From contig JAMWBK010000008.1 of assembly GCA_029953675.1 (NCBI GenBank), positions 2,053,291-2,117,290 of the forward strand: DNA of 64,000 bases. Direction: 5' to 3'. This document shows, one piece after another, positions 4,582 to 64,000 of this stretch. Both the position numbers and the translations under genes were made by a program. The stretch comes from Rhodosorus marinus CCMP1338. Its lineage: Eukaryota > Plantae > Rhodophyta. Numbering within the stretch: the first letter of the stretch is position 1; the number at the start of each line of letters is the position of its first letter. The notes beneath the pieces are model-generated. The model had not been told where the DNA came from and made no database searches. It was given only the letters and a program-made list of their open reading frames with translations.

Positions 4582-4900
4582 AGTAAAGTCCAGTAAAGTC
4601 CAGTCCAGTAAAGTCCAGTAAAGTCAAGTAAAGTCCAGTCCAATAAAGGCATTAAAGCCCAGAAAAGCCCATAAAAGCCCAGTAATGCCAGTAATGCCCA
4701 GAAAAGGCCAGAAAAGCCCAGTACAGCCCAGTAAAGCCAGTAATGCCCAGAAAAATCCAGAAAAGTCCAGGAAGCCGAGGAATGCCAGTAAAGCCCAGTA
4801 AAGCCAGTAAAGCCAGTAAAAGCCAGTAAAGCCTAGTAAAGCCGATAACGCCCAGTAAAGCCAGTAACGCCCAGTAAAGTCTGGGTTTAGTAAAGCTAAG
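4582..4900 (+). repeat. Degenerate 9-10 bp tandem repeat tail (AGTAAAGTCC grading into CCAGTAAAGC variants)
   Basis: Visible directly after the family A 3'UTR. Confidence 0.9.
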
Positions 4901-12783: not shown

Positions 12784-13689
12784 GTTCGTGGAACCTCACA
12801 AACGGCTCCTCTGCGAGAAACAACCCCGTTTTCAATCAAAAAACGTCGTTCAAGACCAGTCTAACACATTTAAAACTAAAAACAGACGTAATCCTCAAAA
12901 ATTCGTTGAAGATTTCTGTAGAGAAGTTGCGTCAACGTCAGATACGAAAAGATAAGACTCATATTTATCCTGTCACCACACACCATGCTCTCAAGCCTCG
13001 AGGCACAGTCCTTGGTAATCTACTTTGTCCCCAGCGCAAAAATCAGACCGTACAACATCACCAACACGAGATGGGCTTATTGAACTTCTTTGGCCAGTAC
13101 GGTCGTTGGCTGACACTATTCTGAACTCCATATCTCGTTAAGAGTCTTTCAGGATTCTTAAACAAGGCCGGGACAAACGTGGTTTTGATGGTTCAGGGGC
13201 CCGGTTTTCCTCCACAGTGGTCCTTTTTGAGCCGCCCCGACCGGTTCTCCTTGTTGTTAACCCGTTTGAAGTTCTCCTGTGCGGTATGGACGCTTTGATG
13301 TTGGATGTGCGTGATTTTCGGTCTCCAGTAGTTTTTTAGCCCCTCGTGGGGTTTTCGGGTCTCCAAATAAACAACCTTAACAACGTATTTGTCTTACTCT
13401 TTCACGATTCTCGACCAAATCAAACAAACGTGGCTCTTGGATGATTCTGGAGACTCGTGCTTTTTCACCTGTCCTATTTTATTCCCCTCCGCCTTCTTTT
13501 TTTTGTCTCTGAATGAAGATGTTCCATTCTCAGCGTTGTGCGGCGCGGATGGGCAACGTGTAAACGTAGCGCCCGCCTGCTTCCCCCCTCGCCCGTCGCC
13601 TATAGTAGCGGTGTGACCGGGTTGACTCTTTCATTGGATTGGGGCCCAGGATCAGCTTACAGAACTCCGAAAGCAGCGCATTGCTTATA

Positions 13690-19428: not shown

Positions 19429-19740
19429 GTTCATTTACTTCTTGCGTAACGTTAGTAAAAAAAAAAAAAAAAAAAAGTCTGGGGTTTTTAGGGTAGTTGT
19501 TGTCGAGGATTGGGGTTTTGTTTCTTTTTCGGTCGCGAGCGTGTTCGTTTACGGGAAGCGCTCCCTCTGGTACGCCTTCCACTCGATTTTCCGCGGGGCG
19601 TCGTTTGCATTTGCAACTACTTCTGTCTTCCGGGTGGGTGTGTTGCGGGGCCTTTCCTATTTGGGTTGGGTTTGGTCGATTATTCTCTCGGTGCGGTTTC
19701 ATATTGGTGGTGCAACGTTTCCTTTGCGGATTCCCTCAGG

Positions 19741-24296: not shown

Positions 24297-24508
24297 GGTT
24301 GCGGAAATGTTTTGCTGAGCATCCTACTAATATTTGGCGCTCTTGAGGCGTTTAAGTGTCTCCCTTTGGCGATATTCCAGCGACATGCTTTCCGAGGCGC
24401 GCCATCGGCGCCTGGGGTTGCATGCTTCCCTCCCTAGTTATTAGTTCATCTTCACGCCTTGCGTAGCGCTTCAGGCTATGCTAGTAAAGTCCAGTAAAGT
24501 CCAGTAAA
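24297..24508 (+). mobile_element. Tiny 5'-truncated family A copy inserted in the tail of copy 2
   Basis: Repeats the last ~190 bp of copy 2; agtaa is duplicated at the junction. Confidence 0.85.
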
Positions 24509-25847: not shown

Positions 25848-25956
25848 CGATTTAAGACGTTGCTTGGTGCAACTTAAGGATATTGCTTGGTGCGATTCCG
25901 AGAGAGAAGTGTTTATTCTTTAAGGATTGGTTTTTAAAGATCGGGTTTTTCAGAGT

Positions 25957-28900: not shown

Positions 28901-29742
28901 CGCAGGGAGATTACATCCGTAAACTTACCACGACATACGGATTGAAGGGCTGCCGCACCATATCCACGCCATGCACCGTCACACCTTCTACTAAAGAGAC
29001 ATCGATGGAAATGACCACATCACCATTTCAGGAGCTAACTGGATCCCTCCTTTTCCTAAGTACCAGAACGCGACCAGATATAAGTTTTGCAGTTGGCCAG
29101 ATCGCGCGAAAAATGTCAGATTATCGACTTGGAGATTTTGAAAGAGCGCGGCGGATCCTGAGATATTTGGCGGGAACACAAGGCAAAGTCATGAAATTGG
29201 GCGGTGTTTCGAAAGTGGCTCCAGATGGCGAAGAACCGCCGCAGGATGGCGAACAGGGGGGATTCAGATATCAAGTTACCGGATATTCAGACGCGAGCTG
29301 GGCAAGCCACGAAGACAGCAAGAGCACTACAGGGTCACTGATAATGATCAACGGATCGCCGGTGGCGTATAGGTCGTGGAAGCAGAGGGCCGTTGCTCAG
29401 TCGACGGCGGAAGCAGAATACCAGGCGTTAGGGGATATGTTGACGACCCAACGGTGGGTTCAGGAGCTCATCACTGAGACCGGGAGGAATACAAGCATGC
29501 CATTGGTGGCGTACACAGACAATGTGTCGTGTTTGCGATGGGCGACATCTGAAGATAGCAGGATGTCGCGTCACGTATCTGTTAAGCTGCAATACGCCCG
29601 TGAGAGATGCACATCGGAAGAAGTGCAGCTAAGGTATCTGAGCACCGATGAGATGACAGCAGATATGCTAACCAAGGCGCTCACGAAGGAAAGGATGATG
29701 GCCCTTACACCTGGCCTGGGTGTTGTAGATCGACCATCCTAG
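25957..29742 (+). CDS. Copia Gag-Pol polyprotein
   Basis: Domains in Copia order: CYGCKKPGHIRANC knuckle, protease LDSGAT, WHRRLGH, integrase HSDIAGP/DNALEY/NGMAER, RT KARLVARGF/YVDDML, RNase H YSDASWA/ADMLTKAL. First ATG is at 25957; the ORF is open from 25927. Confidence 0.97.
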   Translation: MAARTRGSVAEHDAHLKDFALPSVFTGDQDSFRSFRNWRHQVECYLTVKGLRDVIDNPIDATEAERQYVSAVFSRVLDGPALDTAFASSREAAPEQVWAALRARYEPSSRETADSVWGKVYRREMHTNESPRSLVNWLQTQFAEIREITGVAPTDEEKRRVLRKILEVRGDEYAEFLFYAAKDKTLDWTGFCNDFEELDRLRGSKQFKPKTDYSAQHVTTVQKKKKKKTPRGFLCYGCKKPGHIRANCPEEQDKEENRPEPRRFHAGMTAVRAPARFVLDSGATDHICTSESAFSGPTRMVDSDVTFGDGTTKTLGKMGTVDLKTLKGDMLSLKDTIYLPGGSLNVVSLSRLMENGFSIRSLDGKTLTIEKDGIQVFKATAKSGLLYTDLEMNRDSRPKTAALSFRSNEDTDAMGWHRRLGHPSAGAVRQLEKNGEIRVSDKVPERFECTSCEKAKMTATGGSGPLRKATMHGECIHSDIAGPYPEGRGGLKYIGIFVDEATGMLGAYPLEHRSLIDEAFREHVMIMKTQHGANVKKLKSDNALEYKGMKPLLRDLGIGWDPSAPYTPSGNGMAERMVRTVKERLRAKLFGSGLPENMWPEALPVVVDNINRTPRSFLRGKSPVESVTMKKPAMREIFPFGCEITYKRAGPGKLGNLESRSAKGILMCVRDSHVARIYDPANGGFRESRHWRVFENVFPAKEMSVNGLEREQRNQREVSVNLMRKGDSLYDVPDPESWSEAMNGAYAEDWKRAASEELGSLRANQTWELIPREEVPKSARILGSRLILKVKRNGDGSVQRFKARLVARGFAQRQGIDYEEVFAPTVDFSSVRVLLTIAAVENHEVEQADVKTAYLNASLNEDLYMMQPRGLEEPGRAEHVCRLRRSIYGLKQAGRERHKKLSKDLVAEGFHKLRTESCVYRREKCLIAVYVDDMLIIGSRTEVETAKLMLSNLYDIKHLGEARDFLGVRIERDRRKQEIYLSQGDYIRKLTTTYGLKGCRTISTPCTVTPSTKETSMEMTTSPFQELTGSLLFLSTRTRPDISFAVGQIARKMSDYRLGDFERARRILRYLAGTQGKVMKLGGVSKVAPDGEEPPQDGEQGGFRYQVTGYSDASWASHEDSKSTTGSLIMINGSPVAYRSWKQRAVAQSTAEAEYQALGDMLTTQRWVQELITETGRNTSMPLVAYTDNVSCLRWATSEDSRMSRHVSVKLQYARERCTSEEVQLRYLSTDEMTADMLTKALTKERMMALTPGLGVVDRPS

Positions 29743-31139: not shown

Positions 31140-31293
31140 ATGAATGAATGGTTTAATCGGAGGCTGAAAAAAAAACCCCGAGGGGAAAAAAAGACTAAGC
31201 GCGGCGAAGTACTCGCGCCTCCAACATCAAAGCGGCATTCATGCGCCACAGCAGGAAACTTAAGCGGGTAAACAACGATTGAAGACGGTCAGG
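31140..31293 (-). mobile_element. Tiny family C 3' end
   Basis: Matches the 3' end of the 7352-8135 copy; gaatc occurs on both flanks. Confidence 0.85.
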
Positions 31294-36791: not shown

Positions 36792-38625
36792 GTTGAGTAA
36801 ATGAATGAATTTATTTAATTTAGATTGACGATCGTATTTTACAGTGTATTGGTGAGGTGTACAAATTGATTGTTTTGCCAAATGAAAATTAAAGAAAGAA
36901 AGAACTTGTTTAGAGAATGATTTTGTGGAGAGGATGTCCGGGCTTTCTCCAGTGCTCGTTGTTGCTGTTTCGGTATTGTTGCAGTCAGCGGTTAACCTAT
37001 TGGCTTCGCTCACTTCCAACTCATTGGGGCCGGTGGTTGGCCACTCGTGCGGATGCTGAAAGTTTCCGTGACCTGGGGTATTTTCTCGATGAAGAGCTGA
37101 GCGCTCTGCCGCGACCCACCTGTGATGTTGTGCGCGCCCAGGTAGGCCTCCCATTGCGATTGGGGGGACTGGGCCTCTGAAATCGTGTTGTGGTCCAACC
37201 TGCAGCCGCAGTAGGGGCCTGGGGAACCGCACTTCCCACTTTGAGCAGCTTGGGTATCTCGAAGTTCCGCAATTTGATGGCGAGCCTCTCGCGGGGTGTC
37301 TTGCTTCCCAGCGTACCGGAAAGCGCCCAAGACTTGTTTCTGGAGCTCCAAACCGCCCTGAATTCCTGTACTAGTCTCCCCGAAACCGTTCAACCCCGTC
37401 TTCCTGACTGGCGAGCTGTATTTGACCGCTCTCGAGGCTCCGCCCCGGGGATTCGTCCTGCGCCTGAACCTGTTCTAGGGAGATTGACCCAGTGGTTGCC
37501 GCAGAAGAAGAAGTTCCAGTTGATCCTCCTGATGATTCCCAGCGCGCTGGGAGCCGAGCTCAAGCACGCACGGATGCGCTGCAAAATATCCTTTCTTGGG
37601 ACTTGCACCGTGCTGCATATGGCCGACTCCTCGCACAGATGGTCTCATCTTCTCGCGCTCGCGCCCGCCTACGTAGTCTTGGAGGGGTTATTAGCTCTCA
37701 GTGGCTCATGACCGTACCAGCCTTTCCGCCACTCACACTGTCGGATTTCGAAGTGCGTACTTCACTGCGCTTATACCTCGGCTTACATCAGCCCCCTTGG
37801 CCGTACGAGATGGGTTCGTCGTGCCCTCTCTGCTCTCAGACTGAAGACAACGCAGATTTTAGCGCCCACCTGCTCGCTAGTTGCCCGGCGGTGAAAGGTG
37901 CTCGAACCCGCCGCCACACACGGATCTTGAACCTGTTATACCGGGAACTTCGGCCTATAGTCCGGCAAGCCGGTCTGGAAATCGAACGTGAGAAACCTTT
38001 ACCCGTTGCGGACTTTCAAAATGATGAACGCCGTGTAGCCGACCTGGTGATCACCTGTGACGACAGCCGCCCTACCACATACGTTGATCTTGCTGTTCCT
38101 AACCCTCAAGCTAGTCGTCATCTCCCGGCTGCGGGGGAGCGCCGTGGATCTGCCGCCGCCAGCATGAGACGCCGCAAAGAGATCAAATACGCGGGGGCTT
38201 TGTCTTCCCCTGGTGTTCGTGCTTCGGCACTAGCACATCGCTTGGTACCCCTGATCATTGAGTGCTTTGGGTTCATGGACTCTGTTGGTTCTCGCTGGCT
38301 TCGGGAGTTGTTCCGCGAACGCCCTGACCGTCGTCAATCGTTGTTTACCCGCTTAAGTTTCCTGCTGTGGCGCATGAATGCCGCTTTGATGTTGGAGGCG
38401 CGAGTACTTCGCCGCGCTTAGTCTTTTTTTCCCCTCGGGGTTTTTTTTTTCAGCCTCCGATTAAAACCATTCGTTCGTTCGTTGAGTAAATGAATGAATT
38501 TGTTTAATTTAGATTGACGATCGTATTTTACAGTGTATTGGTGAGGTGTACAAATTGATTGTTTTGCCAAATGAAAATTAAAGAAAGAAAGAACTTGTTT
38601 AGAGAATGATTTTGTGGAGAGGATG
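36792..38625 (+). repeat. 145-bp direct repeat (36792-36936 and 38481-38625)
   Basis: Identical except for one substitution; the copies exactly flank the family C insertion. Confidence 0.92.
36937..38480 (+). mobile_element. Family C 5'-truncated copy (RT thumb to RLE; ORF 37492-38421)
   Basis: LLLFRYCCSQRLTYWLRSLP...LPLRLGGLGL, zinc knuckle, RLE and tail. Flanked by a 145-bp direct repeat. Confidence 0.9.
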
Positions 38626-41454: not shown

Positions 41455-44400
41455 TGGTATTACTGGTCTTTATTTGGTCTTTATTGGGCTTTATTGGGTT
41501 TATTAGCATAGCCTGAAGCGCTACGCAAGGCGTGGAAGGGGACTAAGAACTAGGTAGGGAAGCGTGCAAACCCTGGCGCCTATGGCGCGCCTCGGCAAGC
41601 ATGCTGCTCGAATATTTCCACAGAGAGACACTTAAACGCCGCAAAAGTTCCAAGTATTCAACACGATGCTCACTAAAACATTTCCGCAACCACTCCAAAC
41701 CCGACTTCTCCACGTGACGAAAGTTTTCCACAATGAAAGGCTGGAACCGGTGGGAGCGACCCTCAGCGCGCGGCAGACTGGCCATACTCTCAGCATACCG
41801 TCGTTCCTTCACTCGGCGAGGTGCTGAAGCAGCTGCCCCCCGGCGGCGAGCGGCTGCAGTGAGATGGACGCTAGCCACAGGGCATGTTATCGCGAGGTCA
41901 ACATATGTGGAGCGTCTGGCAGCAGCGTTGGAGACAAGAAGATCTGCAATACAGCGAGGCGGCGCCGTGTCCGAGACCGATCTCGGATGTTCCGATTCCA
42001 CCTCCACCGTATGCCCTACCCGAGTCAAGCATTCGCTGAGAATGTATTTGAAGCGAGTGTGACGCCTCGTACGAAGACCTCGCAACAGTCCACATGAACC
42101 TAAGAAGTGGTACCCACAAGCATCTATCCGACTCTCACATCCCTGACAGAAAGACGGCCGATTAGAGTGCCACGGAGCTTGCGGCAAACCCAGGTAGATC
42201 CGTGCAGCGGAGCAGGCAGCGGAGTGAAAGGCATCGAGACGGTGACCCAGTGACGAGGGGAGAGTGGTTAACCACAAGTGCGATAGATTCCCTCCCATGC
42301 CGCGGAGTCGAGCGGTGGTTGGCGGGGTGAGGGGAGAGTTGAGCAAGATTGCGTGAGCAGCACTGTCTTGACCCCAGGTGAGGCTATGTTGAATCACATC
42401 AGTGCGCGAGCTCCACAATCGACTCAGACCCGGGTAATCGGCAACCGGTGACCCGGGGCTAGCTTCCCCCTCGTCGGCGAGTACTCTGTCGATGGGAGAG
42501 TTCTCGACCGCCTCAGTCCTTCCCTACAGCTCCTTCCAGGAGCGAAATTTGGAGCGGCTCTCATCCGGCACGGAGTTGCACTTGCCGAACGCCTGTTGCA
42601 GAGCATCATACAGACTCAAAAGTGGTGGCGGCAGGGTCACCGGGTCTTCGCTCGTCAGTGCTTTAGCCAGAAGGCAGGCACTACGCATCCGAAAACTCAC
42701 CAAAGTGCGAAGCGCGGTAGCCCAGGAGGCGACCGCCGCAGGTGAGCAGACGAGTCCACGGTCGGCCACGCCAAATCCACCTAAGCGCAACGGTAGGGCA
42801 ATCTGGGCACGAATTATGTCCCGGTCAGGAGCAGCATCAACATCCAGCGGTTCATCCAAGAGAGTGCCCCAGTGTTTCAAGGTCAGCTCGTCGGCCTTGG
42901 CGGCGATCGACGAGCCTCAATGTGGTGGAAGGCTTCGTAGCCAGTAATTCAGCCGGGGAACCGGCACAAAAGCGGGAAAGCAGATATACCGATTGTAGCA
43001 TGCTGTCCGGTAGGCGCTCAATGGCGTCGGTGAGCTGCTTATCTCTTGCTAACACTCGTTCGCAAGAGTCTCGGACAAAGTTGTCACTCCCCAAATCGAC
43101 GCCATGGTGCTCGAGGCCTTCACGTTCGCCAATGAGTCGAAGACGAGGGGGCAAAGAGGCCATCGAAACTCCACTCGGGGCGAGAAAACGGCATTTCGTA
43201 GGCTCAACCATCAGGCCTAATCTCTGTGCAATCGCTTCGATCTGGGTCAGCCCAAGAGCCAGGGTCTCAGGGGTGCCTAACAACGTGACGTCGTCGTGAT
43301 AAGCGCAGATACGAATGTCCGGAACCGCAACCGCGAGACGTTGGAGAACGAGCTGCAAGGCACAGGCGTACAGAACAGGCCTACAAGGATCACCTTGTTG
43401 AACGCCAGTGAGTGCGTCAAAAACAGAGCCCGTCGGTGTCAAGTAAGAGAGGCTCCCCCCTCCGTAGATACCGGATAGAAACGGCCACGCCTCCGGGAAT
43501 ACCCTTCTAATCACCTCCAAAGCATGCGTCCGCGAAACTCTGTTAAACGCGTTGCGGAAATCAACCACCAAAACACCCCAATCCGGCCGACTCGCGCGCT
43601 CCCGCTCAATCGCATGAGTTATCAGCTGGACTTTACTGGACTTTACTAGGACTTTACTAGCATAGCCTGAAGCGCTACGCAAGGCGTGAAGATGAACTAA
43701 TAACTAGGGAGGGAAGAATGCAACCCCAGGCGCCGATGGCGCGCCTCGGAAAGCATGTCGCTGGAAAATCGCCAAAGGGAGACACTTAAACGCCTCAAGA
43801 GCGCCAAATATTCAGTAGGATGCTCAGCAAAACATTTCCGCAACCACTCTAAACCCGACTTATCCACGTGACCAAAGCTTTCCACAATGAATGGCTGGAA
43901 CCGGTGAGAGCGACCCTCAGCGCAAGGCAGACTGGCCATGCTCTCAGCATACCGTCGTTCCTTAACTCTTCGAAGGGCTGAAGCCGCGGCCCCCCGGCGG
44001 CGGGCGGCTGCGGTGAGGTGGGCGCTGGCCACGGGGCAAGTAATCGCAAGGTCCACATATGTTGAGCGTCTGGCAGCAGCGTCGGAGACGAGGAGATCGG
44101 CTATACAACGGGGCGGTGCAGAGTCCGAGATTTATCTGGGCAGTTCCGACTCAACCTCAACCGTATGCCCTATCCGAGTCAAAAATTCGCTGAGGATGTA
44201 CTTGAGGCGAGTGTGACGCCTCGTACGGAGACCTCTCAACAGTCCGCAGGAACCCAGGAAGTGGTAGCCACAAGCGTCAATCCGGCTCTCACATCCCTGA
44301 CAGAACGACGGCCGATTAGAGTGCCACGGAGCCAGTGGCAAACCGAGATATATCCGTGCGGCCGAACGGAACTGGAAAGCATCGAGACGATGACTCAATG

Positions 44401-47400: not shown

Positions 47401-50105
47401 AGACGGAACCTGTCCTCGTGTAGTCTGGGGCCGGACATTTCGCACCCACAGAAATTGGAGAGTGGTCTCCACAGGTCCATCCTGAGGCTCGCGAGATGGT
47501 AGGAAACGGAGCATAGCCGCCGTACGTGTGGCAGTGGTGCCCTTCCGCAAGACTGATGCGTACGAAGCGCCCCCCTTGCGCCGCAGTAGCGGGGAGCTGG
47601 TGACCACCTGAGGGCTGGCCCAAGAGAGGGAAGTCCACAGCTGCAGTCTCCTCCACACCGGTTGCCGCACAGTCACCACCACCATTGCCTCGAGTCCCCG
47701 AGCGCTGAAGCGCGTTTTGGCCCGGCCTGCCGCTCCCCAACGTCGTACTGTCCCGCGCAGAAGCAACAGCCCTCGCCTGTCCCGGGACAGGTTCATGTTG
47801 ATTGACCTGATGTTGACTGCCTTCAGCCAACGCTGCCACTCTGGGGCAATTCAAATTCTCGTCCGAATTTGAATTTGACCTGGCCAGCAATCCCGATTCC
47901 AGCCCACCTAGCTTCTGGGTGAGCTGAGGGAGCACTCCACGATCACTCGCAGCCGTGATCAGGCTGGTGACAGCGGAGATAAGTGCACGCGCCTGGGTGC
48001 CAGAAGCGCCTTCCAAGTCAACCTCGGAAGAAAACGTGCCGCAGCTGAGGCGAACACGGAGTCCCCCACCTGGCAGTGCCTCCTTGGGAGGAGGCTCCGT
48101 CGAGCGCGGAGATATCCCTACCATCCTGAGGGAATGCGCAAAGGAAACGTTGCACCACCAATATGAAACCGCACCGAGAGAATAATCGACCAAACTCAAC
48201 CCAAATAGGAAAGGCCCCGCAACACACCCACCCGGACGACAGAAGTAGTTGCAAATGCAACGACGCCCCGCGGAAAATCGAGGGGAAGGCGTACCAGAGG
48301 AAGCGCTTCCCGTAAACGAACACGCTCGCGACCGAAAAAGAAACAAAACCCCAATCCTCGACAACTACCAAAACGCCCAATACTTGTCAGCTCGCAACCC
48401 CCGGAAAATCCCACCCCGACCTGCAAGGGTGCCATAAAGGCGGTGACCCGCTGGCGAAGGCGCTGGCATAGCCACCTCCCAGCTAACTTCCGTAGACTCT
48501 CGACCGTACCGATCGGCCGGAGACGCGGGTGTGCCGGCTCGTGGTCGGGTTTCGTGAGCAAGCAAAGTTATGCCCGTCGCAGATGGTCCCAAGCGGTAGG
48601 CGCACCCCCTGCACCCTGGAATAGCATATTCAGGAGCTTCACCAGTGCGCTCTGGCCAGGCTTGCTCAAGGCCTGCAGTAGTTCCATTCGGAGCCCGGAG
48701 GGTCCAGGGCAGCGTCCACGCCGGGAGGTCCGGAGCAAATCCTCCAGATCAGAATCACGGAGCGTCAGGTCGATGCGAAACCTGGCCAACTCTGGACGAT
48801 CTAAAAAGGCGTCGAAGTCGGGTAGCATGTCCACGTCGGACGAAGGGAACACGCTGACACAGTCTGGTCGAGACTCTCGTCGTAGGGGAGGACAGGCGCC
48901 TGGCCCTCCAGGACCCGTGCCGCTCGGCTGAGGTCGCCCACTGCTTTCTGTACTCGAGCCGTGACGGGCGAGACTGGTCCAGGCCGAGCCCGACGGACAG
49001 AGGGTTCCGATGACGCCAAGTAGCTTTGCTGCAACACCTCAAATTCCCCCTTCAGGAACATGGCCAGTCGTTCCCGGACGCGCCATCTGCGCGCCGATGT
49101 GTGAGTGGGGGTCAGAATCAGGCGCGGCATGACTCCCAGAAATTGCCACGTGACGGTATCGCGAAAGTTACGTGCCAGACTCGTGAAAATGAAGTCCAGG
49201 ATGGTCCCAGCCACTAAGAGCTCTCCTCGAGGTAGGACGACAGGCGGAATCCTGCCACGGAGGGGTAGGAAACCTCCTTCCATATCAATCCACCGCCGGA
49301 GTCAACTCCGAAAATGCGTCCTCCAGATGCCCCAGTCTCCGCCCTCCTTCAAGACATAAGACTGCAGGTCCATGGGCTGCGATCGCGCAGCCAAACCTGG
49401 GGAACTAATCGTGCTTCTCCCCCTTAGACCCGGGGGAGTCGGTCCTAATCCGTTTGGTGCTTTGCCCTCCTAAGGTTGTCAGACGGCCGCTCCTCGATGC
49501 TCGCAGTATATTGCCTGCTGGGTTAGACGAATCGTTCGGGAGTCTCTCAACCGACATGCCCTCCGGCGCTCCCACTTCGCCACTATCACTGGAACTGGTA
49601 CTAGAGGCAGATCCATCTAACATCCCTAGCCGCTGAAGCGCTGACTTGTAGCCCGAGTTCAGCACGAGGCGCCGCTCCCGATCGAAAATGGTGGAGACGG
49701 CCGCGCGCATGTGGCGTGGACCCGTCCGAAAGCGCTCCAACAAGATCCTCTCGATGCGATGAATGCGCAACCAATGAATAGCTGCCGCCTTCACGCGGCT
49801 GTCCTGCTCCGAAAGCCCTTCAGTCTGCCCTGGGGACAAGAACTGACCGGAGAACCGGTCGAACGCAAAGTGCATGGTGACCTTTGGGTGGCCACTAACC
49901 ATCGTGCACTTTCGGGCCACTGCTCGGTGGGTTTCCCGAGCAACGCTTGAAGGTAAGTGGTGGCGTTCGCTGTGACGAGGAAGTGAACGTCGCGACCCTC
50001 CGTGTTGGCAAAAATAAAATCTTCACGACGACAGCCCAAGGATTCCGCAAAAACGTTCCGAAAATCGCGCAGACTCAGTACTTGGCCCCGGGTTGTCAAC
50101 CCGTC
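41455..50105 (-). mobile_element. Family A' long copy (41455-43627 and 48387-50105), split by family A copy 3
   Basis: The two parts rejoin in frame at GGCEL|ITH. ORF1 C-terminal part is at 49405-50105. Confidence 0.87.
43628..48386 (-). mobile_element. Family A copy 3, full length, with frameshifts and deletions in both ORFs
   Basis: ORF2 pieces at 45348-46697, 44897-45295 and 43697-44446. Flanked by a 6-bp TSD (tcagct at 43622-43627 and 48387-48392). Confidence 0.92.
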
Positions 50106-51650
50106 TGTGCGCAACAAGTTCCCAGAACTGACTCTTGTGGCTGTCCACGAAGACATTTCCTTGGTGGGCGACCTCGAACTGCTGAAAGGCGCTCTGAATT
50201 GGAGTCAAGAGGCTCTACCCAGGACAGGAGCGCATCTACAGGGATCCAAATGCATCCTCTACGCACGAAGGCTCGACACAAAACGACGTATCAACCTCGC
50301 TATTCCGGACATTCACGTGACGCGAGAAGGGACTACGCTATACTCTATTCCAATTGGTACGCGACAATACGCGGAGGCGACCGGCCGGGCAATATAAACA
50401 CGGCATGGCCAGCAGGTGCAAGCTCTTCAACGTCTACCGGAGTGTGACTTACAACGTTAACCTGGCCATTTTCCGTTACTGTGCGGGAACGCGACTTGCA
50501 TACCATACCAGAGGGCCAGCGTATCCACTAGGACGGACCACCGCCAGAGAAGCTGATGGAATCACTCTCTCGGAACTGGAAGGTCTATGTGTAGGTCTGA
50601 GACACCACCAGGATATAACCGAACTAGAGGCGAAAGTAGATGAACAGCAGATTCGACTACCATGCCGATAGGGAGGGCTTGGGTTTGCTATGCGAACCCT
50701 GATCCAACCAGTACGTTTCACGCGGGATGGAAGCAGAGCCTTCAGGAGAATATCACGGCATCGTGCTAACTGAGGCGACTCCTTTTGGACGGTTCTTCGC
50801 ATCCTGGAGGAGATATGCCGGAGCAGATCCACTTCCCGTGGACCACGGACGAACTGCCAGTTCAACTTGTGGCGGCAAGCCAAGCTGTGCGGCTAAGGAT
50901 CTCACCAAGAACGAGTGAACGCATCAAGAGGCTAGCGGAATGGCAGGTATTAGGCGACTCGGTGAGAGGGACAGAAACCGATCCCGGGAGTACACGAGGA
51001 CAGGACGGTCCCATCCAAAAAAACTCCCTCTAGCGAGTGCCACCGTCATGCGTTCGAGCTACTCACTGAGGATGCCAGCATTGAGGATGTAGACCGCGGA
51101 CGAACCCGGTCTGCCTCAGGTTGTGGAGTATGGCTGCGGGACTGCTCCAACGTAGGACCGCGGAAGCTAAGTCGCGACGAGATGATCTGGAGCATGCGAA
51201 TGCTGCTAGGTCTACCGCTGCCAGGTTTAACACGATCGTACCGATGTACGGTGTGTGAACAAACCACACGACTTCAAAGGGGTCCAGTGTTTGCATTATT
51301 TGTCGCACATCATCAGCTATGCGAACTAAGCGTCACGATGAGCTAAACGCGGAGTTGAGCCGGTGGTTGCCTCTGTGGAATTTCACGGACTTGCAAGTGG
51401 AACCGCAGGGGTTCTTTAGGTATTCAGGGATACGTCCTGACATCGTAGGGAACTATTGAAGATTGGAGTTCCTCCGGGTCCGTGCGCGGTTGGGTTAGCG
51501 CGGGGGGGGGATGGCAATAACAAGGCACCGTTATTACCTCGTGGACATAATAAGGAATATAAGCTCGTGTCTAAAATTATACGGAATGCTGGACATGACT
51601 TTGAGCTTTTTCAAGACAGGGAACGTAGTTCGTGGTTTTGAGCAAGACCG
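50106..51650 (+). mobile_element. Decayed family D-like RLE retrotransposon (RT C-terminal part, zinc knuckle, RLE)
   Basis: REGTTLYSIPIGT, LAIFRYCAGTRL, QIRLPCR*GGLGF and RTKRHDELN...RPDIVG; homologous to 60735-61759. Confidence 0.75.
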
Positions 51651-52829: not shown

Positions 52830-53520
52830 GGACTTACTGGTGTTCGTTTTACTGGTTTTTATTGGTTTTTATTGGTCTTTATTGGTTTTATTGGTCTTGG
52901 TCTTTATTGGTCTTTATTGGCTGAGGCGCTACGCAAGGCGTGAAAGGGAACTAGGAACTAGGTACGGAAGCGTGCAAACCCAGGTGCCGATGGCGCGCCT
53001 CGGCAAGCATGCTGCTCGAATATCGCCACAGAGCATAGCCTGAAGCAACTACGCAAGGCGTGAAAGGGAATTAAGAACTAGGTAGGGAAGCGTGCAAACC
53101 CAGGCGCCGATGTCGCGCCTCGGCAAGCATGCTGCTCGAATATCGCCACATAGAGGCGCTTAAACGCCGCAAAATTTCCAAGTATTCAACAGGATGATCA
53201 GTAAAGCATTTTTTCAGCAACCACTCCAAACCCGACTTCTCCACGTGACCAAAGCTTTCCACAATGAAAGGCTGGAACCGGTGGGAGCGACCCTCAGCGC
53301 GAGGCAGACTGGCCATACTCTCAGCATACCATTGATCTTTATTAGCATAGTCTGAAGCGCTGCGCACGGCGTGAAAGGGAGCTAAAAACTAGGTAGGGAA
53401 GCGTGCAAACCCAGGCGCCGATGTCGCGCCTCGGCAAGCATGCTGCTCGAATATCGCCACAGACCGATACTTAAACCTCGCAAAAGTTCCAAGTATTCAA
53501 CAGGATGCTCAGTAAAGCAT
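52830..53520 (-). mobile_element. Three head-to-tail tiny family A' 3' ends with a (CCAATAAAGA)-like tail
   Basis: 3'UTR core near 52925, 53035 and 53345. Confidence 0.85.
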
Positions 53521-56681: not shown

Positions 56682-57569
56682 AGTGATAGAGATAATCTGG
56701 GGTTACGTAACCCCAGATACAAATAGACAGCTGCCAAGCAAAGTACAGTTATATATTCTTCTCATGCACAAGCACGATCCTTGTATTGAAAGTCTTGTTT
56801 TCCATCGCAGGAAATCTTACTGGGTGAGCAAAGCTGAGGAGCTCCTCGGTGACGACGATAATGGTGATGGGGACGGGCACGTAGGTCTGCAGTACCATCA
56901 CTACGAAATCGACCCAACTTATCAGGACGGTATCCCCATGAAGGTGAGTTTCACAGCAGAATTCCTGCATACTAATTCGCAACCGCAAATCATCTTGACG
57001 TATGTGTGTGTAGTTTATACGCATTGACGAAAATCTTCACGATTTGCAAGTACGTATGATACATGACCTTAGACTCCAAACAAATAATTACAACGAGATG
57101 GATAAGTATAATGAATGTACGCAATACGCTTATTGAGTGTATATATACAGAATCAACGAGTAATCGCAGTCCTTACACCCTTCGTTCCTCCGCCGCATGG
57201 AAGGAATTCGCAACGGTCCTCGCAGGCATCGATCAGGTCGTAGAATTCGTGATCAGAGTCCGGATCCTATTTCCTCCTCGGAATGCTCGTGAAGTCGCGA
57301 AGTGCGTTTCCTCTCGAGGATTGAGGTGGGTCTTCCCCTTGACTTCACGGGGCTCAGTCGTGTCCATGTCCAGTATCGTTTCCAGCGCGTTTTTGACGCG
57401 CCCGTGTTCGTGGATCTACCCTCCATAACGGAGGTGGTGTCCAGTATCCCTACAAAGCTCTCGCAGAGGTGCTTCCGGACTTCCGGCACTATGTATCAAC
57501 TACTTAAGCGCTGCGCTATCTGGAGACCTCTGGCCGTTGGAATGTAGGTTCCTCAACACCTGAGCTCCT

Positions 57570-58555
57570 GTTTACGGATTCCGTTGGTTCTCATTGGCTT
57601 CGCCCGAAGCCAACGAGAACCAATCGTTCCGTGAACGCCCTGACCTTCTGTCCTCGTTGTTTACCCGTTTAAGTTTCTTGCTGTGACGTATGAACGCTGC
57701 TTTGATTTTGGAGGCGCGCGATTGTCGCCGAGCTTAGTCATTTTTTCCCCTCGGGGTTTTTTTCTTTTCGGCCTCCGATTTAAAAGATTCATTCAACAAT
57801 AAATAATGCGCTCAGCCTTTCTTGGATTAAACCAATTCATTGTCCGATTAAACCAATTCATTCAACTAAAATGTGCGGAGGCCTTGTCTTCCCCAGGCAT
57901 TCGTGCTTCGGCTCTAGCTCATCGCCTGGTCCCTCTGGTCATTGAGTCCTTCGGGTTTATGGATTTCGTTGATTCTCGTTGGCTTCGGGAATTGTTCAAC
58001 GAACGCCCTAACCGTCTATCCTCGTTGTTTACCTGTTTAAGTTTCTTGCTGTGGCGCATGAACGCTGCTTTGATGTTCGAGGCGCGCGATCTTCGCCGCG
58101 CCTAGTATTTTTTTTCCCCTCGGGTTTTTTTTCTTTCGGCCTCCGATTAAACCAATTCATTTCAACTAAAAACGTTTAAACAAATTCATTTAACTAAAAA
58201 GCGGCTGCCAATATGAGACGTCGCAAAGGGTTGAAGTAGGCGAGGGCCTTGTCTTCCCCAGGCATTCTTGCTTCGGCTCTAACTCATCGCCTCGTACCTC
58301 TGGTCACTGAGTGCTTTGGGTTTATGGATTCCGTTGGTTCTCGTTCGCTTCGGGAATTGTTCCGCGAACGCCCTGACTGTCTGTCCTCGTGTGTAAACAG
58401 CAAGAAACTTAAATGGGTAACCATTTAAGTTTCTTGCTGTGGCGTATGAACGCTGCTCTTATGTTTGAGGCGAGCGATCTTCGCCGCGCTTAGTCTTTTT
58501 TTCCCCTTCGGTTTTTTTTTTCTTTCAGCCTCCGGTTAAACAAATTCATTCATCT
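57570..58555 (+). mobile_element. Head-to-tail array of three to four short family C 3' ends
   Basis: Repeated gaacgccct...cttcgccgcgc.tagt...cctccgattaaac.aattcatt blocks. Confidence 0.85.
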
Positions 58556-59202: not shown

Positions 59203-60297
59203 ATGGAGAAAACAATACTGTTTGGATGCGTTTTGATGGTGGCACTGCACGTGAGCGTCGCTGTGAATCCGAATGTGGTGGCCATCACTGGAAAGCGTCA
59301 GGACGTAATCCAGCTCAATGATGCGGAGACGTTGGAGACGGTCCAGGTTATTGAAGACAAGAGTGGAAATAAGCTATTTCAGCTCATTTCGCTGGGGAGA
59401 AATATCTACGTGACGACTGTGAATAACGACGAAGAGTTACATGCCGAGCTTCGGATGTATGAAATTCAGTCTAGAACGAACAAGCTTGAGTTTGTGCAAT
59501 CGAAATCGTACGGAATTCAGTGCATCCAGCCGATCGCATTGACAGCAAGCTACGATTACAGCGACCAGACGGTGCTGGCTATGACGTGCCTGGAGACAGA
59601 CACGGTCATGGTGGTGAATCCTGCGACGCTGAAACTGATCAAGGTAATTCCGAAACCCGTTATCAAGGACATCCTCATCAAGGATATCGCGGAGTCTGCG
59701 ATGACCGCCAGGTACCTCTACGTCGCCTACGTCATCGGCCCGCAGTTTGATGACGACTTCAGCCAGGGGTTGCTGGTACAGTACAGCCGGAACACGTGGG
59801 AGGTCGTCAACTTCTCCATAGTTCGTGGACAATACTTTCACCTCCTGATAGCCGGAAGCAGTGATCTCTTCCTGACGGCGACAGGCAACGGTGAATCCTA
59901 CCTCCTCCAGTTGAACCCAAACACCCTAGAGGAAGTTAATCGGAAAACCCCCAAGGGCTTCGATTTTCTCCGGATGACGATGACTCCTGACCAGAGGAGT
60001 TTCTACATGTACATCCACGGCTCAGCGAAGAAAGCGGGAAGAATGCGTAGCTTCGACCAGACCATTTACCCGGCCAATAAGTTCTGCAGCGATGTCCGAA
60101 TCGAGATGTCCCCAGGCACCCAACCCATCGTCATCAACGGCTACCTGTTTATCAGGTCCAACAAGTCGATGACAAGGTTCACCCTCAAGAGTGAATCCGG
60201 ATGTCCCCGTCAGAAGTCTCAGGCCGCGTATACCCTAGACTCAGTCCAAGATTCTGGCGTCGCCATGGCCTGCCTGAACTGCCTCTCGATCTCTTAG
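59203..60297 (+). CDS. Secreted protein (364 aa), probable beta-propeller; last host gene before the telomere
   Basis: Signal peptide MEKTILFGCVLMVALHVSVA; beta-rich units of about 40 aa (VMVVNPATLKLIKVIP, LYVAY). The fold is inferred. Confidence 0.75.
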   Translation: MEKTILFGCVLMVALHVSVAVNPNVVAITGKRQDVIQLNDAETLETVQVIEDKSGNKLFQLISLGRNIYVTTVNNDEELHAELRMYEIQSRTNKLEFVQSKSYGIQCIQPIALTASYDYSDQTVLAMTCLETDTVMVVNPATLKLIKVIPKPVIKDILIKDIAESAMTARYLYVAYVIGPQFDDDFSQGLLVQYSRNTWEVVNFSIVRGQYFHLLIAGSSDLFLTATGNGESYLLQLNPNTLEEVNRKTPKGFDFLRMTMTPDQRSFYMYIHGSAKKAGRMRSFDQTIYPANKFCSDVRIEMSPGTQPIVINGYLFIRSNKSMTRFTLKSESGCPRQKSQAAYTLDSVQDSGVAMACLNCLSIS

Positions 60298-60584
60298 GGC
60301 AGAATTGAACCCGCGAGGCGGAAACTGCTCAACGGAAAGCTCCACAGCGCAGCAGAACTTTCAGCTAAGAACGGAGCTATCTGTGGTTGCTGTTCTGGGG
60401 AGCCAGGTTGTTGTTTCTTTTGAGAGTGGCGTAAATTTTCGGTGAAGAGCTGTTTGCTTCTCTCTCTCTCTCTCTCTGTATCTGTCTCCAACTCCTGACC
60501 GTCTGTCGCTTCGCTCTTATGTTGAGATGTGATTTAGTAAAAAAATACTTTGAAATCGATCACCTGAATCGAACGCCGGCTTTA

Positions 60585-60604
60585 GGGGTTACGTTAGTCT
60601 GGGG
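60585..60604 (+). repeat. Interstitial telomeric repeat (1.25 units)
   Basis: ggggttacgttagtctgggg, an exact match to the terminal array. Confidence 0.9.
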
Positions 60605-61754
60605 ACCCTGAAGCATGGCAGGCAAAACTCCACACGTTCCTGGACACCGCAACAGACTCCGGACGCCACTGGTGGATGGTCACCAACAGCCCAGTACGCA
60701 CCTGAGAGCATGTCCCTAATGCGCAAGTCAAGCATTGGAACCTACTACTCCAGCGTGCTCTGGGGTGAAAGATGCCCTACTGTGGAGTCAAAATGTCCTC
60801 CCTACCATTGGGGCGGAACTACAGCCTCAAAAGTACACCCTATTCGGCTACCACATAGCATCCCCTCGACTGGTTACCAGATACATGCCGGACCTCAATG
60901 TTTCTCGCGAAGGAGTAACCATACACTCCATTCCCATTGGGACGAGAAAATATGTGGAAGAAGCTTTGAGAACACTACAAAACAAGCATGAAACACTGGG
61001 CAAAGAGATAGCCCATCTGCCTCCTGAAGAGCTCAACACACAACTGGCGCTGTTCCGATACTGCTCGGAAACGAGACTTGACTACACCCTAAGGACAGTG
61101 GCTTACCACTACGGCAGAAGTTTAGCACGAGAAGCGGACTACAACACACGACTACAGTTGGAAAGGCTACTAGGCAGTCTACAAACAGCCCAACGGACGA
61201 CCCTGACGGAACGCACCCGGCTTGGAAGCAGGTAGCACTCCCCTGCCGATGGGGGGGACTGGGATTCTGCACTAGAAGGCGCATCCAACCTATTTCTTTC
61301 TACACAGGTTGGATGCAAACCTTTGCAGCTAACAAGGGCTATTGGCCCCACCTACAAAAATTGTTAGAACGCACCCAGGAAGCTACACCACAGCTGCTCA
61401 ACCCCCCGAGGACACTACACCGCTCTACTGACGACCTCCCCTCCCAAATCCTAGTGGCAACTACAGCCATTAGGGGGAGACTGAGACCGGAAACCAGCCC
61501 CCGAATAAGGCAGCTCCTCAACCCCACGTACCTGACTGCTGCCCCTGCAGCAAATTCCCCCCCTGACCAGTCTGCGGTGAAGCAAGGTTCCTTACAACAG
61601 ACCCTCTCAAGAGAGGCACACCTTACTGCTTTCACCCGACTGGTCACGGATCCCTTACTCGACCCGGAACATCGTGCCCGAATCCGTTCCGCTGCAGGAG
61701 CAGGTTCAGGCGTCTGGCTAAGAGATTTGCCACAATTCGGACCCCGAAAATTGA
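60605..61754 (+). mobile_element. Family D ORF2 fragment with an internal deletion of the RT core and frameshifts
   Basis: DPEAWQAKLHTFLDTATDSGRHW (ORF2 N-terminus) is joined to VKDALLWSQ...LALFRYCSETRL...GGLGF; no RLE remains. Confidence 0.75.
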
Positions 61755-61794
61755 GTTAGTCTGGGGTGACGTTAGTCTGGGGTTTCTGGGGTTA
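61755..61794 (+). repeat. Interstitial telomeric repeats (about two units plus a partial variant)
   Basis: gttagtctggggtgacgttagtctggggtttctggggtta. Confidence 0.9.
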
Positions 61795-61846
61795 TTGGAT
61801 AAGGTTCGAAATTAAGTTTGTAGGTTTGGTTCGCCTGGGGTAAAAT

Positions 61847-63430
61847 ATGCCAAACACTGGCACTTCCCCTTCGTTTGGGGAGGGGAATTCGAAGAATACC
61901 GGTGCAATGAGCGGAATGCTGCCTGCCTCTCCAATTGCTGAACGAGAGGACGGGCATGGGTCACATGATGGACTACAAGCGACTACTTTACGCCCAGAAG
62001 AACCGTGCCAGGAGGGGAGTCGGACAGAGCCTTCTACGTCATCCTCTCCCGCTAACACGTTCCTCCACCAACTTCGAAGCTACGATCAGTGCTATCACGC
62101 CCTCGGAATTGGGGAGCAGGACATCGCGAACTTCTACAAAGCAGTCTTCAATCTCTACTCGCGAATTAACAGTACCACAGAGATACATAATGTCACCAGC
62201 CGCCTCACGGAACTTGCACAGAAGCCCCACATGTGGCAAGCTTCTGCACAGACTTCGAATCCCTCGGGAGCTTCGGCGCATCACCGGCCGACGGCGGTGG
62301 TCAATCAACTTGCGGCCGGAACGGGCTTCAATCAAGTTCCGGTCGGGACAGGTGTCCCTGCGGGTGTCCGGTTTGAGACGGCTTTCCCGGCCCTTGGGAA
62401 TGACACCCCCAGACCCACCTACGCGGCGGTTTCGGCGGTAGAAGTACCAGAGAACGGTGTAGAGACACCCATCCGCACCATGCGAAGGCCTGGGCCGCAG
62501 ACGCAACATGCCGCCCTGAAGCAGTTACACGCCACAGTGGGAGGGGCCAGCTGGGGCCCTGAGACCACGCCAGTGCTTGTTACCCTCCGAAATATCCGTC
62601 CCCCACGACAGGATGAGGTGGCTGCTTCTGACTTCACTACGGTCCTCTGCCGGGCGTTGGGCATTCCCGGCTCGTATGTGGCGCATTTGGACTTTATCTC
62701 TTCACACGTGAGCCTCGTGTGCCACCCTGATGCAATTCCTCTTCTCCAAAGCGCAATCAGCCGGGGTGTGTTCCGGACTGGGATTTTCGGATCCTTTACC
62801 ATGCGACACCCCGATCGACAGGTGAGCCTGTACACCGGGCACGGTTTAGAGGCGGATAACCTGCTGGGGTTCAACGAGCGGCAACGACTCGCCGGCGGAG
62901 ATGTCAGGGCTCAAACGCAGAGACGAGCGATCGAGCAGATCATACGCATCCGCGCGCGGCTGAGCCGTCGACATCTCTCGTTTACAACTCTCGCCCGAGT
63001 GCACGAGATGCTGGACCAACGGCTTGAAAAGTTACAAGCCCTTCAACAGCAACCTGCGGTATCCAGGGAGAGCGCGGAACCCCTAACGACTGCAGCCGCA
63101 CCAAACGCAGCCGCTGAAGCCTCGTCGTCTCCGGACGATGCACAGGCAGCCTGTGGGACTGTTGCCACTCAGGGTGACTCCGGTGGAACATCCCAAGTAC
63201 CGCAGGATGTGGAAGAAGAGGACAATCCCCATGCGGAACTCTCGTGCAACTTGCCGGAACCTCCTCAACTTAAGCGCTCGCGCCGGTCTGCCAACGGATC
63301 TAGCACGGATGCAGAAATGACACCAGCTCCCCTCGACCCCACACCGAGCGAGAATGGACTACAACCTGAAACTGCAGCCAATACAAACCCGTCGGTTCAG
63401 CAGGAAGCGCAGGACAACGAGCAATCATAA
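61847..63430 (+). CDS. Family D ORF1 (527 aa)
   Basis: Shares motifs with family A ORF1: TYAAV vs SYASV, LRNIRP...DF...LG vs VRNVRP...DF...LG, RAIEQIIRI vs AAIHWLRI. Confidence 0.75.
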   Translation: MPNTGTSPSFGEGNSKNTGAMSGMLPASPIAEREDGHGSHDGLQATTLRPEEPCQEGSRTEPSTSSSPANTFLHQLRSYDQCYHALGIGEQDIANFYKAVFNLYSRINSTTEIHNVTSRLTELAQKPHMWQASAQTSNPSGASAHHRPTAVVNQLAAGTGFNQVPVGTGVPAGVRFETAFPALGNDTPRPTYAAVSAVEVPENGVETPIRTMRRPGPQTQHAALKQLHATVGGASWGPETTPVLVTLRNIRPPRQDEVAASDFTTVLCRALGIPGSYVAHLDFISSHVSLVCHPDAIPLLQSAISRGVFRTGIFGSFTMRHPDRQVSLYTGHGLEADNLLGFNERQRLAGGDVRAQTQRRAIEQIIRIRARLSRRHLSFTTLARVHEMLDQRLEKLQALQQQPAVSRESAEPLTTAAAPNAAAEASSSPDDAQAACGTVATQGDSGGTSQVPQDVEEEDNPHAELSCNLPEPPQLKRSRRSANGSSTDAEMTPAPLDPTPSENGLQPETAANTNPSVQQEAQDNEQS

Positions 63431-63556
63431 TGCCGTCCAGACGCAGGGGACGTAAACGCCCACGAGAAGAGCCTCTGTTCTTCTCTGACCGGGAGGCCTG
63501 GATTTGCCGCTGGAACGCTTTCGTAGCTGAGATCACGGAGGAGGGGAGGCATTGGA
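63430..63556 (+). pseudogene. Family D ORF2 N-terminal stub
   Basis: The ATG overlaps the ORF1 stop (TAATG). MPSRRRGRKRPREEPLFFSDREAWICRWNAFVAEITEEGRHW then runs into the telomere. Confidence 0.7.
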
Positions 63557-64000
63557 GTTACGTTAGTCTGGGGTTACGTTAGTCTGGGGTTACGTTAGTC
63601 TGGGGTTACGTTAGTCTGGGGTTACGTTAGTCTGGGGTTACGTTAGTCTGGGGTTACGTTAGTCTGGGGTTACGCTAGTCTGGGGTTACGTTAGTCTGGG
63701 GTTACGTTAGTCTGGGGTTACGTTAGTCTGGGGTTACGTTAGTCTGGGGTTACGTTAGTCTGGGGTTACGTTAGTCTGGGGTTACGTTAGTCTGGGGTTA
63801 CGTTAGTCTGGGGTTACGTTAGTCTGGGGTTACGTTAGTCTGGGGTTACGTTAGTCTGGGGTTACGTTAGTCTGGGGTTACGTTAGTCTGGGGTTACGTT
63901 AGTCTGGGGTTACGTTAGTCTGGGGTTACGTTAGTCTGGGGTTACGTTAGTCTGGGGTTACGTTAGTCTGGGGTTACGTTAGTCTGGGGTTACGTTAGTC
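63557..64000 (+). repeat. Terminal telomeric array, 16-bp unit GGGGTTACGTTAGTCT, about 27.7 copies
   Basis: Perfect tandem array running to the window end, G-rich strand pointing outward, one variant unit at 63675. Confidence 0.88.

Follow-up and report, generated by a model that had tools for sequence, protein, structure and literature searches.

Two inactive pieces of a probable telomere-inserting mobile element stacked at a chromosome end of the red alga Rhodosorus marinus

How does a chromosome come to end in telomere repeats that alternate with fragments of a mobile element? The question is raised by the terminal part of a 64,000-nucleotide stretch from the red alga Rhodosorus marinus CCMP1338 (contig JAMWBK010000008.1, positions 2,053,291 to 2,117,290 of the forward strand; the whole stretch is referred to as the window), whose last base is also the last base of the contig (2,117,290 bp). 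The assembly, GCA_029953675.1, is a Nanopore genome of this member of the Stylonematophyceae and has 13 large contigs, 12 of them with at least one telomere (PMC10250338). The final 3.4 kb of the window consist of telomere repeats and two dead pieces of a mobile element, here called D. Taken together, the anatomy of this end, the orientation and junction phases of the copies, the homology of their domains and the recurrence of the arrangement at other ends make it probable that D is a site-specific long interspersed nuclear element (LINE) with a restriction-like endonuclease (RLE), which becomes stacked at chromosome ends through insertion, breakage and healing.

The last annotated host gene of the window encodes a 364-aa protein that is annotated in GCA_029953675.1 (look-up position JAMWBK010000008.1 2107493-2117290) and was assigned to no family in a Pfam scan. 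Between its stop at 60297 and the first telomere unit at 60585 lie 287 bp of unique sequence, in agreement with the 290 bp of the initial annotation, and the order given there (telomere, D fragment, telomere, D 5' portion, terminal telomere) was confirmed in the window. Positions 60300-60584 were considered as a remnant of a D 3' untranslated region (UTR) and rejected, as no convincing alignment was obtained. The end is composed as follows, with ORF denoting open reading frame and RT reverse transcriptase:

59203-60297, + strand: last annotated host gene, 364 aa (ORF with an exact product in GCA_029953675.1)
60585-60604, + strand: 1.25 telomere units, GGGGTTACGTTAGTCTGGGG, with unique sequence to the left and D piece 1 to the right (5' junction J1)
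60605-60764, + strand: D piece 1a, ORF2 codons ~20-72 (N-terminal region) with an in-frame stop, ending in GCTCTGGGG; from three-frame translation and alignment to the ORF2 N-termini of the D copy on contig 7 (L002) and of piece 2
60765-61754, + strand: D piece 1b, ORF2 from the post-RT 'thumb' through the linker region, cut before the CCHC motif
61755-61795, + strand: ~2.5 degenerate telomere units, GTTAGTCTGGGG TGACGTTAGTCTGGGG TTTCTGGGGTTA, which cap piece 1 and lead into piece 2
61796-61846, + strand: D 5' UTR, short, 5' end approximate
61847-63430, + strand: D ORF1, intact, 527 aa
63430-63557, + strand: first 42 codons of D ORF2, then truncation
63558-64000, + strand: terminal telomere array, ~28 units of GGGGTTACGTTAGTCT to the contig end, with a variant unit at 63666-63681

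The first unit proper spans 60585-60600 and is carried on to 60604 by GGGG; the second tract holds one unit at 61763-61778 and, by repeat finding, two copies of TCTGGGGTT. As first described, both D pieces start after telomere units, lie on the + strand facing the end, and stop at telomere sequence.

The telomere repeat of R. marinus is the 16-bp unit GGGGTTACGTTAGTCT (window 63554-64000; contig L004, introduced below, 2815-3068). It has 29 matches in the window at ≤3 mismatches, against 0.33 expected by chance, and the array at 63554-64000 comprises 28.0 copies with 99% matches, the G-rich strand running 5' to 3' towards the end. The genome paper contains no statement of a telomere motif for R. 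marinus (PMC10250338), a 2013 survey left the repeats of three classes of mesophilic red algae unidentified (PMC3622300), and literature searches with four phases of the 16-mer found no paper. A scan of Joint Genome Institute (JGI) metagenome contigs for GTTACGTTAGTCTGGGG returned ten single chance matches from unrelated samples, in a collection without Rhodosorus-type samples.

Piece 1 is a decayed composite. It begins at about codon 20 of ORF2 (PEAWQAKLHTFLDTATDSGRHW; piece 2 counterpart REAWICRWNAFVAEITEEGRHW), and continues to codon ~72; there, at ~60764, the sequence passes directly to the post-RT thumb, with ~410 codons including the RT gone. The jump lies inside GCTCTGGGG/TGAAAG (slashes mark junctions), and the thumb part opens with LLWSQNVLPTIGAELQ. 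Further lesions are the in-frame stop in 1a and a frameshift near 61215-61235 in 1b; the 3' end, ...AAAATTGAG/TTAGTCT, falls ~30 codons short of the CCHC motif. RT-bearing relatives align to piece 1 on both flanks of the missing RT, and the thumb of 1b is 52-57% identical at the amino-acid level to D copies on contigs L002, L003, L005, L016 and L021, compared with 27-29% to family A, a second LINE family of the window. The deletion junction (60758-60766 in GCTCTGGGG/TGAAAG) reads TCTGGGG, which also precedes other D 5' junctions. Piece 1 could be the product of two events (truncation, minimal healing, new insertion) instead of one deleted copy.

Piece 2 (~61796-63557), a young 5' part, retains a ~50-nt 5' leader, the intact ORF1 and 42 ORF2 codons, and is truncated at ...CATTGGAG/TTACGTTAGTCT (.../TTACG). 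The two pieces have no DNA similarity to each other. Their sole protein overlap is 23 codons at 43% identity (tblastx match of 63487-63555 in piece 2 to 60604-60672 in piece 1), and they therefore appear to belong to different sublineages. Neither reading frame of piece 1 has a Pfam match, and RT and RLE are absent from both pieces by Pfam, translation and alignment; both are remnants without activity. That ORF1 of piece 2 has stayed intact points to a source copy of recent date at another place in the genome.

ORF1 ends and ORF2 begins within the shared letters AUAAUG (window 63427-63432; L002 11395-11400), an overlap that suggests termination-reinitiation, as described for SART1; in L003 it reads AUGA. 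The start of D ORF1 is considered genuine, since the same MPNxGxSPxxGEGN opens the ORF1 fragment P0038. The conserved core of the protein covers ~aa 205-400. An exact look-up of D ORF1 in public assemblies returned no record, the frames of transposable elements being mostly unannotated in the R. marinus genome. A word-indexed homologue search retrieved P0001 alone, and an exhaustive HMMER search of 1.84 billion representatives matched 11 proteins, nearly all of them short fragments. P0041 (503 aa) matches the central ...DA(I/L)PL(L/V)Q.A..(R/S)GVFRTG.F... domain of D ORF1 (1.6e-6) and also the N-terminal motif of family A ORF1 (1e-5). Because P0041 matches both, the D and A ORF1s are probably distant homologues; direct profile-profile comparison of the two gave a probability of 11%. 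The initial annotation had credited the lineage with its own ORF1, an overstatement: the family is tiny, yet P0041 links it to family A. No Pfam domain was found in D ORF1 or P0041, and an AlphaFold2 model of ORF1 from a 2-sequence alignment was unusable (mean predicted local distance difference test score 38.7).

What the window pieces lack is present in their relatives. RVT_1 was detected in the conceptual translations of the D-lineage proteins P0004 (3.7e-10) and P0002 (2e-8), preceded in D ORF2 by ~240 residues. Past the linker, the D copies on L003 and L005 carry C-x2-C...H-C, RH(N/D), E, RPD, D-V-(K/T) and a conserved K, and an 11-sequence alignment of this CCHC/RLE domain shows no variation at C, C, C, H, E, R.D, D and K. 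The profile of these 11 sequences matched the CCHC/RLE region of R2 proteins (9nl3_A, 9.4e-11; R2Tg, 1.2e-10; R2Bm 8gh6_A, 8.2e-8), and the label RLE is therefore justified for the D lineage, not for the window copies; the D-lineage RLE domain alone (P0025) had no PDB match. No N-terminal apurinic-type endonuclease was found, Pfam giving RVT_1 alone in family A ORF2, P0002 and P0004. Judged by these translations, D is a two-ORF lineage without long terminal repeats, with a predicted RT and a predicted C-terminal CCHC/RLE. The initial description as a two-ORF RLE element thus holds for the relatives, in which RT and CCHC/RLE were identified, and does not hold for the window pieces. The R2 proteins of Bombyx and Taeniopygia (8gh6, 9dou, 9nl3) are the best solved-structure matches both for the CCHC/RLE and for the RT of family A ORF2. 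R2 is likewise a site-specific element using target-primed reverse transcription; it has a single ORF, N-terminal zinc-finger/Myb motifs and a 28S ribosomal DNA target, whereas D has an ORF1 and a telomere target. Inspection by eye of the conceptual D ORF2 N-termini, a stretch outside the Pfam scans, revealed no zinc-finger/Myb motifs.

The thumb regions of D sublineages are 45-67% identical to each other and 21-37% identical to family A. From this divergence it follows that D is an old, diversified lineage, and that the junctions described below stem from separate insertions. L002 is R. marinus contig 7, a second chromosome end, with a D ORF1-like gene ~15 kb from the contig end; past the last host gene it reads D 3' UTR remnant, AGTTACGTTAGTCTGGGG, 5'-truncated D copy. 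L003-L005, L016-L020 and L022, short contigs that come from two JGI samples, have 50-85% protein identity to D. Two of their proteins also occur in MMETSP, one of them with the UniRef name Rhodosorus marinus, and these contigs are probably Rhodosorus transcript assemblies. L004 runs from a host gene through a short D remnant, a telomere unit, a truncated D and telomere units into a 5'-truncated D. The terminal 3.4 kb of the window could be thought a chimeric join of reads, the assembly having been made from Nanopore reads with NextDenovo and Pilon according to the genome paper; with the same architecture in an independent contig from another sample (L004) and at contig 7, such an artefact is very improbable.

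In L004 and L005/L020, apparently transcript assemblies, the sequence passes from a host gene or D copy via G-strand telomere units into the next D copy, a read-through that is TERRA-like (resembling telomeric repeat-containing RNA) and in D sense orientation. In L004, an anticodon arm and a T arm resembling those of a tRNA lie at 2268-2318, between a degenerate telomere unit and the 5'-truncated D copy (anticodon loop CUCUUAA, Lys-CUU; Rfam 23.1 bits, E 0.008, below the gathering score); ARAGORN found no tRNA in L004, and the segment may be a template-switch product of the D RT. L021 (GCA_039819145.1, JBCBSL010000655.1) measures 2.1 kb and stands under the name 'Cyanobacteria bacterium J06638_22'; its ORF2 belongs to sublineage D-L3 and is 96% identical to that of Rhodosorus-type L003, and the contig is probably red-algal DNA mis-binned into a cyanobacterial metagenome-assembled genome. 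L023 (P0008), which was considered as a further D relative, was rejected: it is GC-rich and environmental, nearer to family A, and without telomere context.

Two independent copies with intact 3' ends are available, neither of them in the window, and in each the 3' end runs straight into a telomere unit, at an identical phase: L005/L020 (...CAATAAAGCTTACC, ...GCTGCACAATAAAGCTTACC/GTTACGTTAGTCTGGGG) and L002 (...CAGTAAAGGATAC, ...GCTGCCCAGTAAAGGATAC/AGTTACGTTAGTCTGGGG). Both are of the form ...AAAG(5-6 nt)/GTTACGTTAGTCTGGGG and are without poly(A), and the 3' UTRs, ~220 nt long in L005 (1977-2198), are 82% identical. The D 3'-terminal motif, sought in the window, gave one weak match at 53895 with no telomere sequence after it. 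On the other side, six clean 5' junctions at varied element positions all follow ...TCTGGGG(TTA) or ...TCTGGGGTT(A):

window: telomere side ends at 60604; D from ORF2 codon ~20
L002: telomere side ends at 10361; D from ORF1 aa 183
L005: telomere side ends at 170; D from the RT
L005: telomere side ends at 2220; D from the post-RT region
L004: telomere side ends at 3068, after 12.4 units; D from ORF1 aa ~285
P0033: protein level, ...FGVTLVWG/IARSRTAGRPGPQ (..IARS..); D from ORF1 aa ~205

In P0033, VTLVWG is the telomere unit read in frame. Two more 5' junctions (window 61783-61795; L004 2265-2280) are ambiguous. From the 5' junctions and the 3' phases, the insertion point is therefore placed, to within 0-3 nt, where GGGG meets TTAC in the unit. 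In all telomere-linked D pieces (window, L002, L004, L005/L020, P0033) the sense strand is on the G-strand, and the copies stand head-to-tail with telomere tracts between them, 5' end proximal and 3' end distal.

In three copies truncated on the 3' side, telomere repeats take over after a TG-rich end, each time in a different phase (TTGAG/TTAGTCT, TTGGAG/TTACG, GGTGGA/GGGGTTACG). This is the pattern that de novo telomere addition, shown directly for truncated MoTeRs (PMC7367193), would be expected to leave, and the cycles of insertion, breakage and healing proposed from the window alone are in keeping with these three copies.

Such healing is also the core of an alternative account, in which D is an ordinary subtelomeric LINE without telomere specificity and the adjoining units are scars of breakage and telomerase action. 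The healing of truncated copies is indeed clear, some flanks in the D lineage are non-telomeric, and LINEs are abundant: the 64-kb window is packed with related fragments, and the RepeatMasker table of the genome paper assigns 9.04% of the R. marinus genome to LINE/CRE-SLACS, a label that is not specific to D. Healing leaves unexplained, however, why repeats lie exactly at the intact 3' ends, in the same phase, in two diverged copies, and why six 5' junctions follow TCTGGGG(TTA) in a single orientation. Family A serves as a comparison from the same subtelomere: its 3' ends (...GGCTATGCT(AGTAAAGYCC)n) are followed by varied flanks, and it occurs in both orientations. An ordinary LINE is thus an unlikely explanation.

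The polarity of the copies bears on a second alternative, the copying of element RNA onto the G-strand 3' overhang at the tip, as in HeT-A/TART or Penelope/Athena elements. The location at the extreme end and the stacking of copies would suit it. End priming of the HeT-A/TART/TAHRE class leaves the element 3' end at the chromosome and the 5' end at the tip, whereas every D copy is reversed, and a telomerase-type array still caps the end; this mode is barely credible for D.

For D as a site-specific element the following course is proposed, in which we infer that the RLE nicks the C-strand, that telomerase heals the breaks, and in what order the events took place. Insertion would proceed by target-primed reverse transcription between ...GTCTGGGG and (G)TTACG of the 16-bp unit. 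Since the sense strand is on the G-strand and the 3' end is distal, the primer for the first strand would be a 3'-OH of the C-rich strand; and since the natural overhang is the G-strand, priming at which gives the opposite orientation, an internal nick of the C-strand would be needed. This nick is placed near 5'-...ACGTAAC^CCCC-3' and would presumably be made by the RLE, leaving the inserted element with the old repeats on its proximal side and the array on its distal side. Where breakage or erosion later reached into the element, telomerase would add a cap at TG-rich sites, and further copies would enter the array so formed. For the end in the window, the history would run from a telomere seeded at 60584 through a D insertion to a break at 61754 with healing, and then from insertion of the second copy (D-b) to a break at 63557 with healing.

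The nick itself could be dispensed with if D complementary DNA were primed at existing C-strand 3'-OH groups (replication gaps, collapsed forks or deprotected ends) independently of an endonuclease, the phase being set by annealing of the RNA 3' end (..YTAC) to telomere sequence. At its 3' side D ends in CTTAC(C) or GATAC(A), similar to the GTTAC(G) that follows, and the proximal tracts next to the insertions are very short, as though D had entered telomeres that were damaged or much shortened. Annealing at the 3' end leaves the fixed 5' phase unexplained, however, and the translated D copies retain all invariant RLE residues. Related RLE LINEs such as R2 nick their targets, which also counts against such capture. 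We regard it as improbable.

Several observations weigh against insertion into telomeres by a dedicated element. Only two independent intact 3' junctions are at hand, which is a weakness. D relatives were found via protein searches, and the R. marinus assembly was reached via its annotated proteins, most frames of transposable elements being unannotated; in L003-L005 and L016-L022, which are probably transcript assemblies, chimeric joins are possible in single contigs. The proximal telomere tract measures 1-2.5 units in 5/6 cases versus 28 in the live array, a shortness not expected if insertion into the 28 units were random, so that an extra assumption is needed. In MoTeR arrays of Magnaporthe oryzae, interstitial tracts of more than ~3 units break and those of ≤2 are stable (PMC7367193); by analogy, survivorship of short interstitial tracts could explain the 1-2.5 units, insertion into very short telomeres being the alternative cause. 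The 3' flank of sublineage D-L3 (L003, L016/L017, L022) is non-telomeric (...CCAATAAAGCTCAC/AGTCTCCCCCGAGG...), its 5' junctions are to copia pol (sense to sense) or to an inverted family A fragment, and a degenerate D-like relic in the window (50100-51450) has no telomere unit. These copies may have been internalised by MoTeR-like rearrangement, may be template-switch or assembly chimeras, or may represent a non-telomeric branch. The proposal that the element targets telomeres is supported by L002, L004, L005/L020 and P0033, with their one orientation and one phase, and is not supported by D-L3 and the relic at 50100-51450.

By analogy with known telomere elements, D is MoTeR/FoTeR-like in its working and SART1-like in its polarity. 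SART1 has its sense strand on the G-strand, two ORFs and UAAUG stop-start translational coupling. SART1 and TRAS1 of Bombyx mori (R1 clade) occupy a fixed telomere position as D does, SART and TRAS in opposite orientations (PMC10088271). They have an N-terminal apurinic-type endonuclease and poly(A) tails, whereas the endonuclease of D is a C-terminal RLE and its two intact 3' ends are free of poly(A). GilM and GilT of Giardia have an RLE and form tandem arrays at chromosome ends, the terminal copy being truncated and telomere-capped. These inserters into telomere repeats, placed with the CRE clade in an RT tree (PMC10088271), differ from D in host supergroup and in their target, TAGGG. MoTeR1 and MoTeR2 (Magnaporthe oryzae), FoTeR (Fusarium oxysporum) and Cnl1 (Cryptococcus) are CRE-clade RLE telomere LINEs. 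MoTeR shares with D the combination of RT and RLE and the fixed orientation in telomere repeats (PMC7367193, PMC12857005), as well as an asymmetric repeat number at the two ends, and its RT-less derivative MoTeR2 may be compared with the RT-less piece 1. MoTeRs form head-to-tail arrays with short telomere tracts between the copies, fragile interstitial tracts and de novo telomeres on truncated copies; their 5' ends face the tip, whereas in D the 3' ends face the tip and 3' parts are lost (PMC7367193). D further differs from the MoTeR group in its 16-bp target, which is not TTAGGG, in its red-algal host, and in a separate 527-aa ORF1 with UAAUG overlap. A compilation of telomere inserters (SART/TRAS, GilM/GilT, Zepp1, MoTeR1, Tx1-1_ACar, Athena, Drosophila HTT) includes no red-algal case (PMC10088271), and literature searches found no telomere-inserting element of this kind for red algae. 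Rather than the candidate new system of the initial annotation, D is a red-algal counterpart of MoTeR/FoTeR, GilM/GilT and SART/TRAS.

The neighbouring repeats of the window form the setting of this end. Family A has a 469-aa ORF1 and a 1018-aa ORF2 with RVT_1 (1.7e-15), the RT matching R2 proteins best among solved structures (1.6e-12); in L002, a family A element is inserted inside a D copy. Its tails are not poly(A) and consist of a variable tandem 10-nt unit, (AGTAAAGYCC)n or (AATAAAGMCC)n (4582-4879, 24483-24508, 43626-43660, 41460-41504, 52847-52920), with unrelated flanks beyond. Family A had been viewed as a relative of relaxed specificity: a relative it is (~30% identical to D), and its own tail and varied targets give no sign of a telomere-specific ancestor. 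Decayed RLE-LINE fragments on the + strand at 36938-38421 and 50100-51450 have no telomere units at their ends; one falls between the two families (37-51% to A or to D), and the other is D-like from the RT into the RLE. A Ty1/copia-type polyprotein of 1271 aa (25927-29742; RVT_2 1e-58, integrase, gag-pre-integrase) lies among the LINE fragments. A ~90-nt repeat (..AATCGGAGGCTCAAAGAAAAAAACCCGGAGGGAAAAAAAAGACTAAGCGCGGCGAAGG..) with ~10 occurrences in the window (e.g. 15195-15361, 13686-13776, 31141-31221, 57711-58552) is also found beside a D remnant at 2150-2250 of L004 and may be the end of another element family.

Two further traces of the telomere unit lie inside the window. At 19449-19486, 44.5 kb from the end and ~30 bp upstream of the point where a full-length family A element begins, a relic unit with its G-strand outward is split by A20 with AGT duplication (ACGTTAGT-A20-AGTCTGGGGTT); it may be a former chromosome end, or a telomere unit that received a retro-insertion consisting of poly(A) only. 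Just past a family A tail, 56696-56717 is a perfect palindrome of two head-to-head partial telomere units (TCTGGGGTTACGTAACCCCAGA), which may be the scar of an end-to-end or sister-chromatid fusion.

Retrotransposons specific to telomere repeats are few; they are listed for insects, a few fungi, Giardia, Chlorella, an anole lizard and rotifers (PMC10088271). They serve as the principal natural models of the recognition of chromosome ends by mobile elements and of the rebuilding of broken ends. The red-algal case adds a new eukaryotic group and an information-rich 16-bp target, and pairs an RLE enzyme with a 'SART-like' orientation that would force C-strand nicking. The same end documents the telomere repeat of a mesophilic red alga, and the junction between D 3' UTR and telomere would be a handy marker of chromosome ends in Rhodosorus assemblies. 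Tentatively, and with appreciable doubt, we further propose a red-algal origin for D as a telomere-specialised lineage of RLE LINEs, independent of the fungal MoTeR/FoTeR group and directed to one C-strand phosphodiester bond of the 16-bp unit. If this is true, it would provide the first defined protein-DNA recognition problem for a long telomere repeat not of the TTAGGG type, and old D sublineages would long have co-existed with telomerase, routinely supplying the sequence between healed ends.

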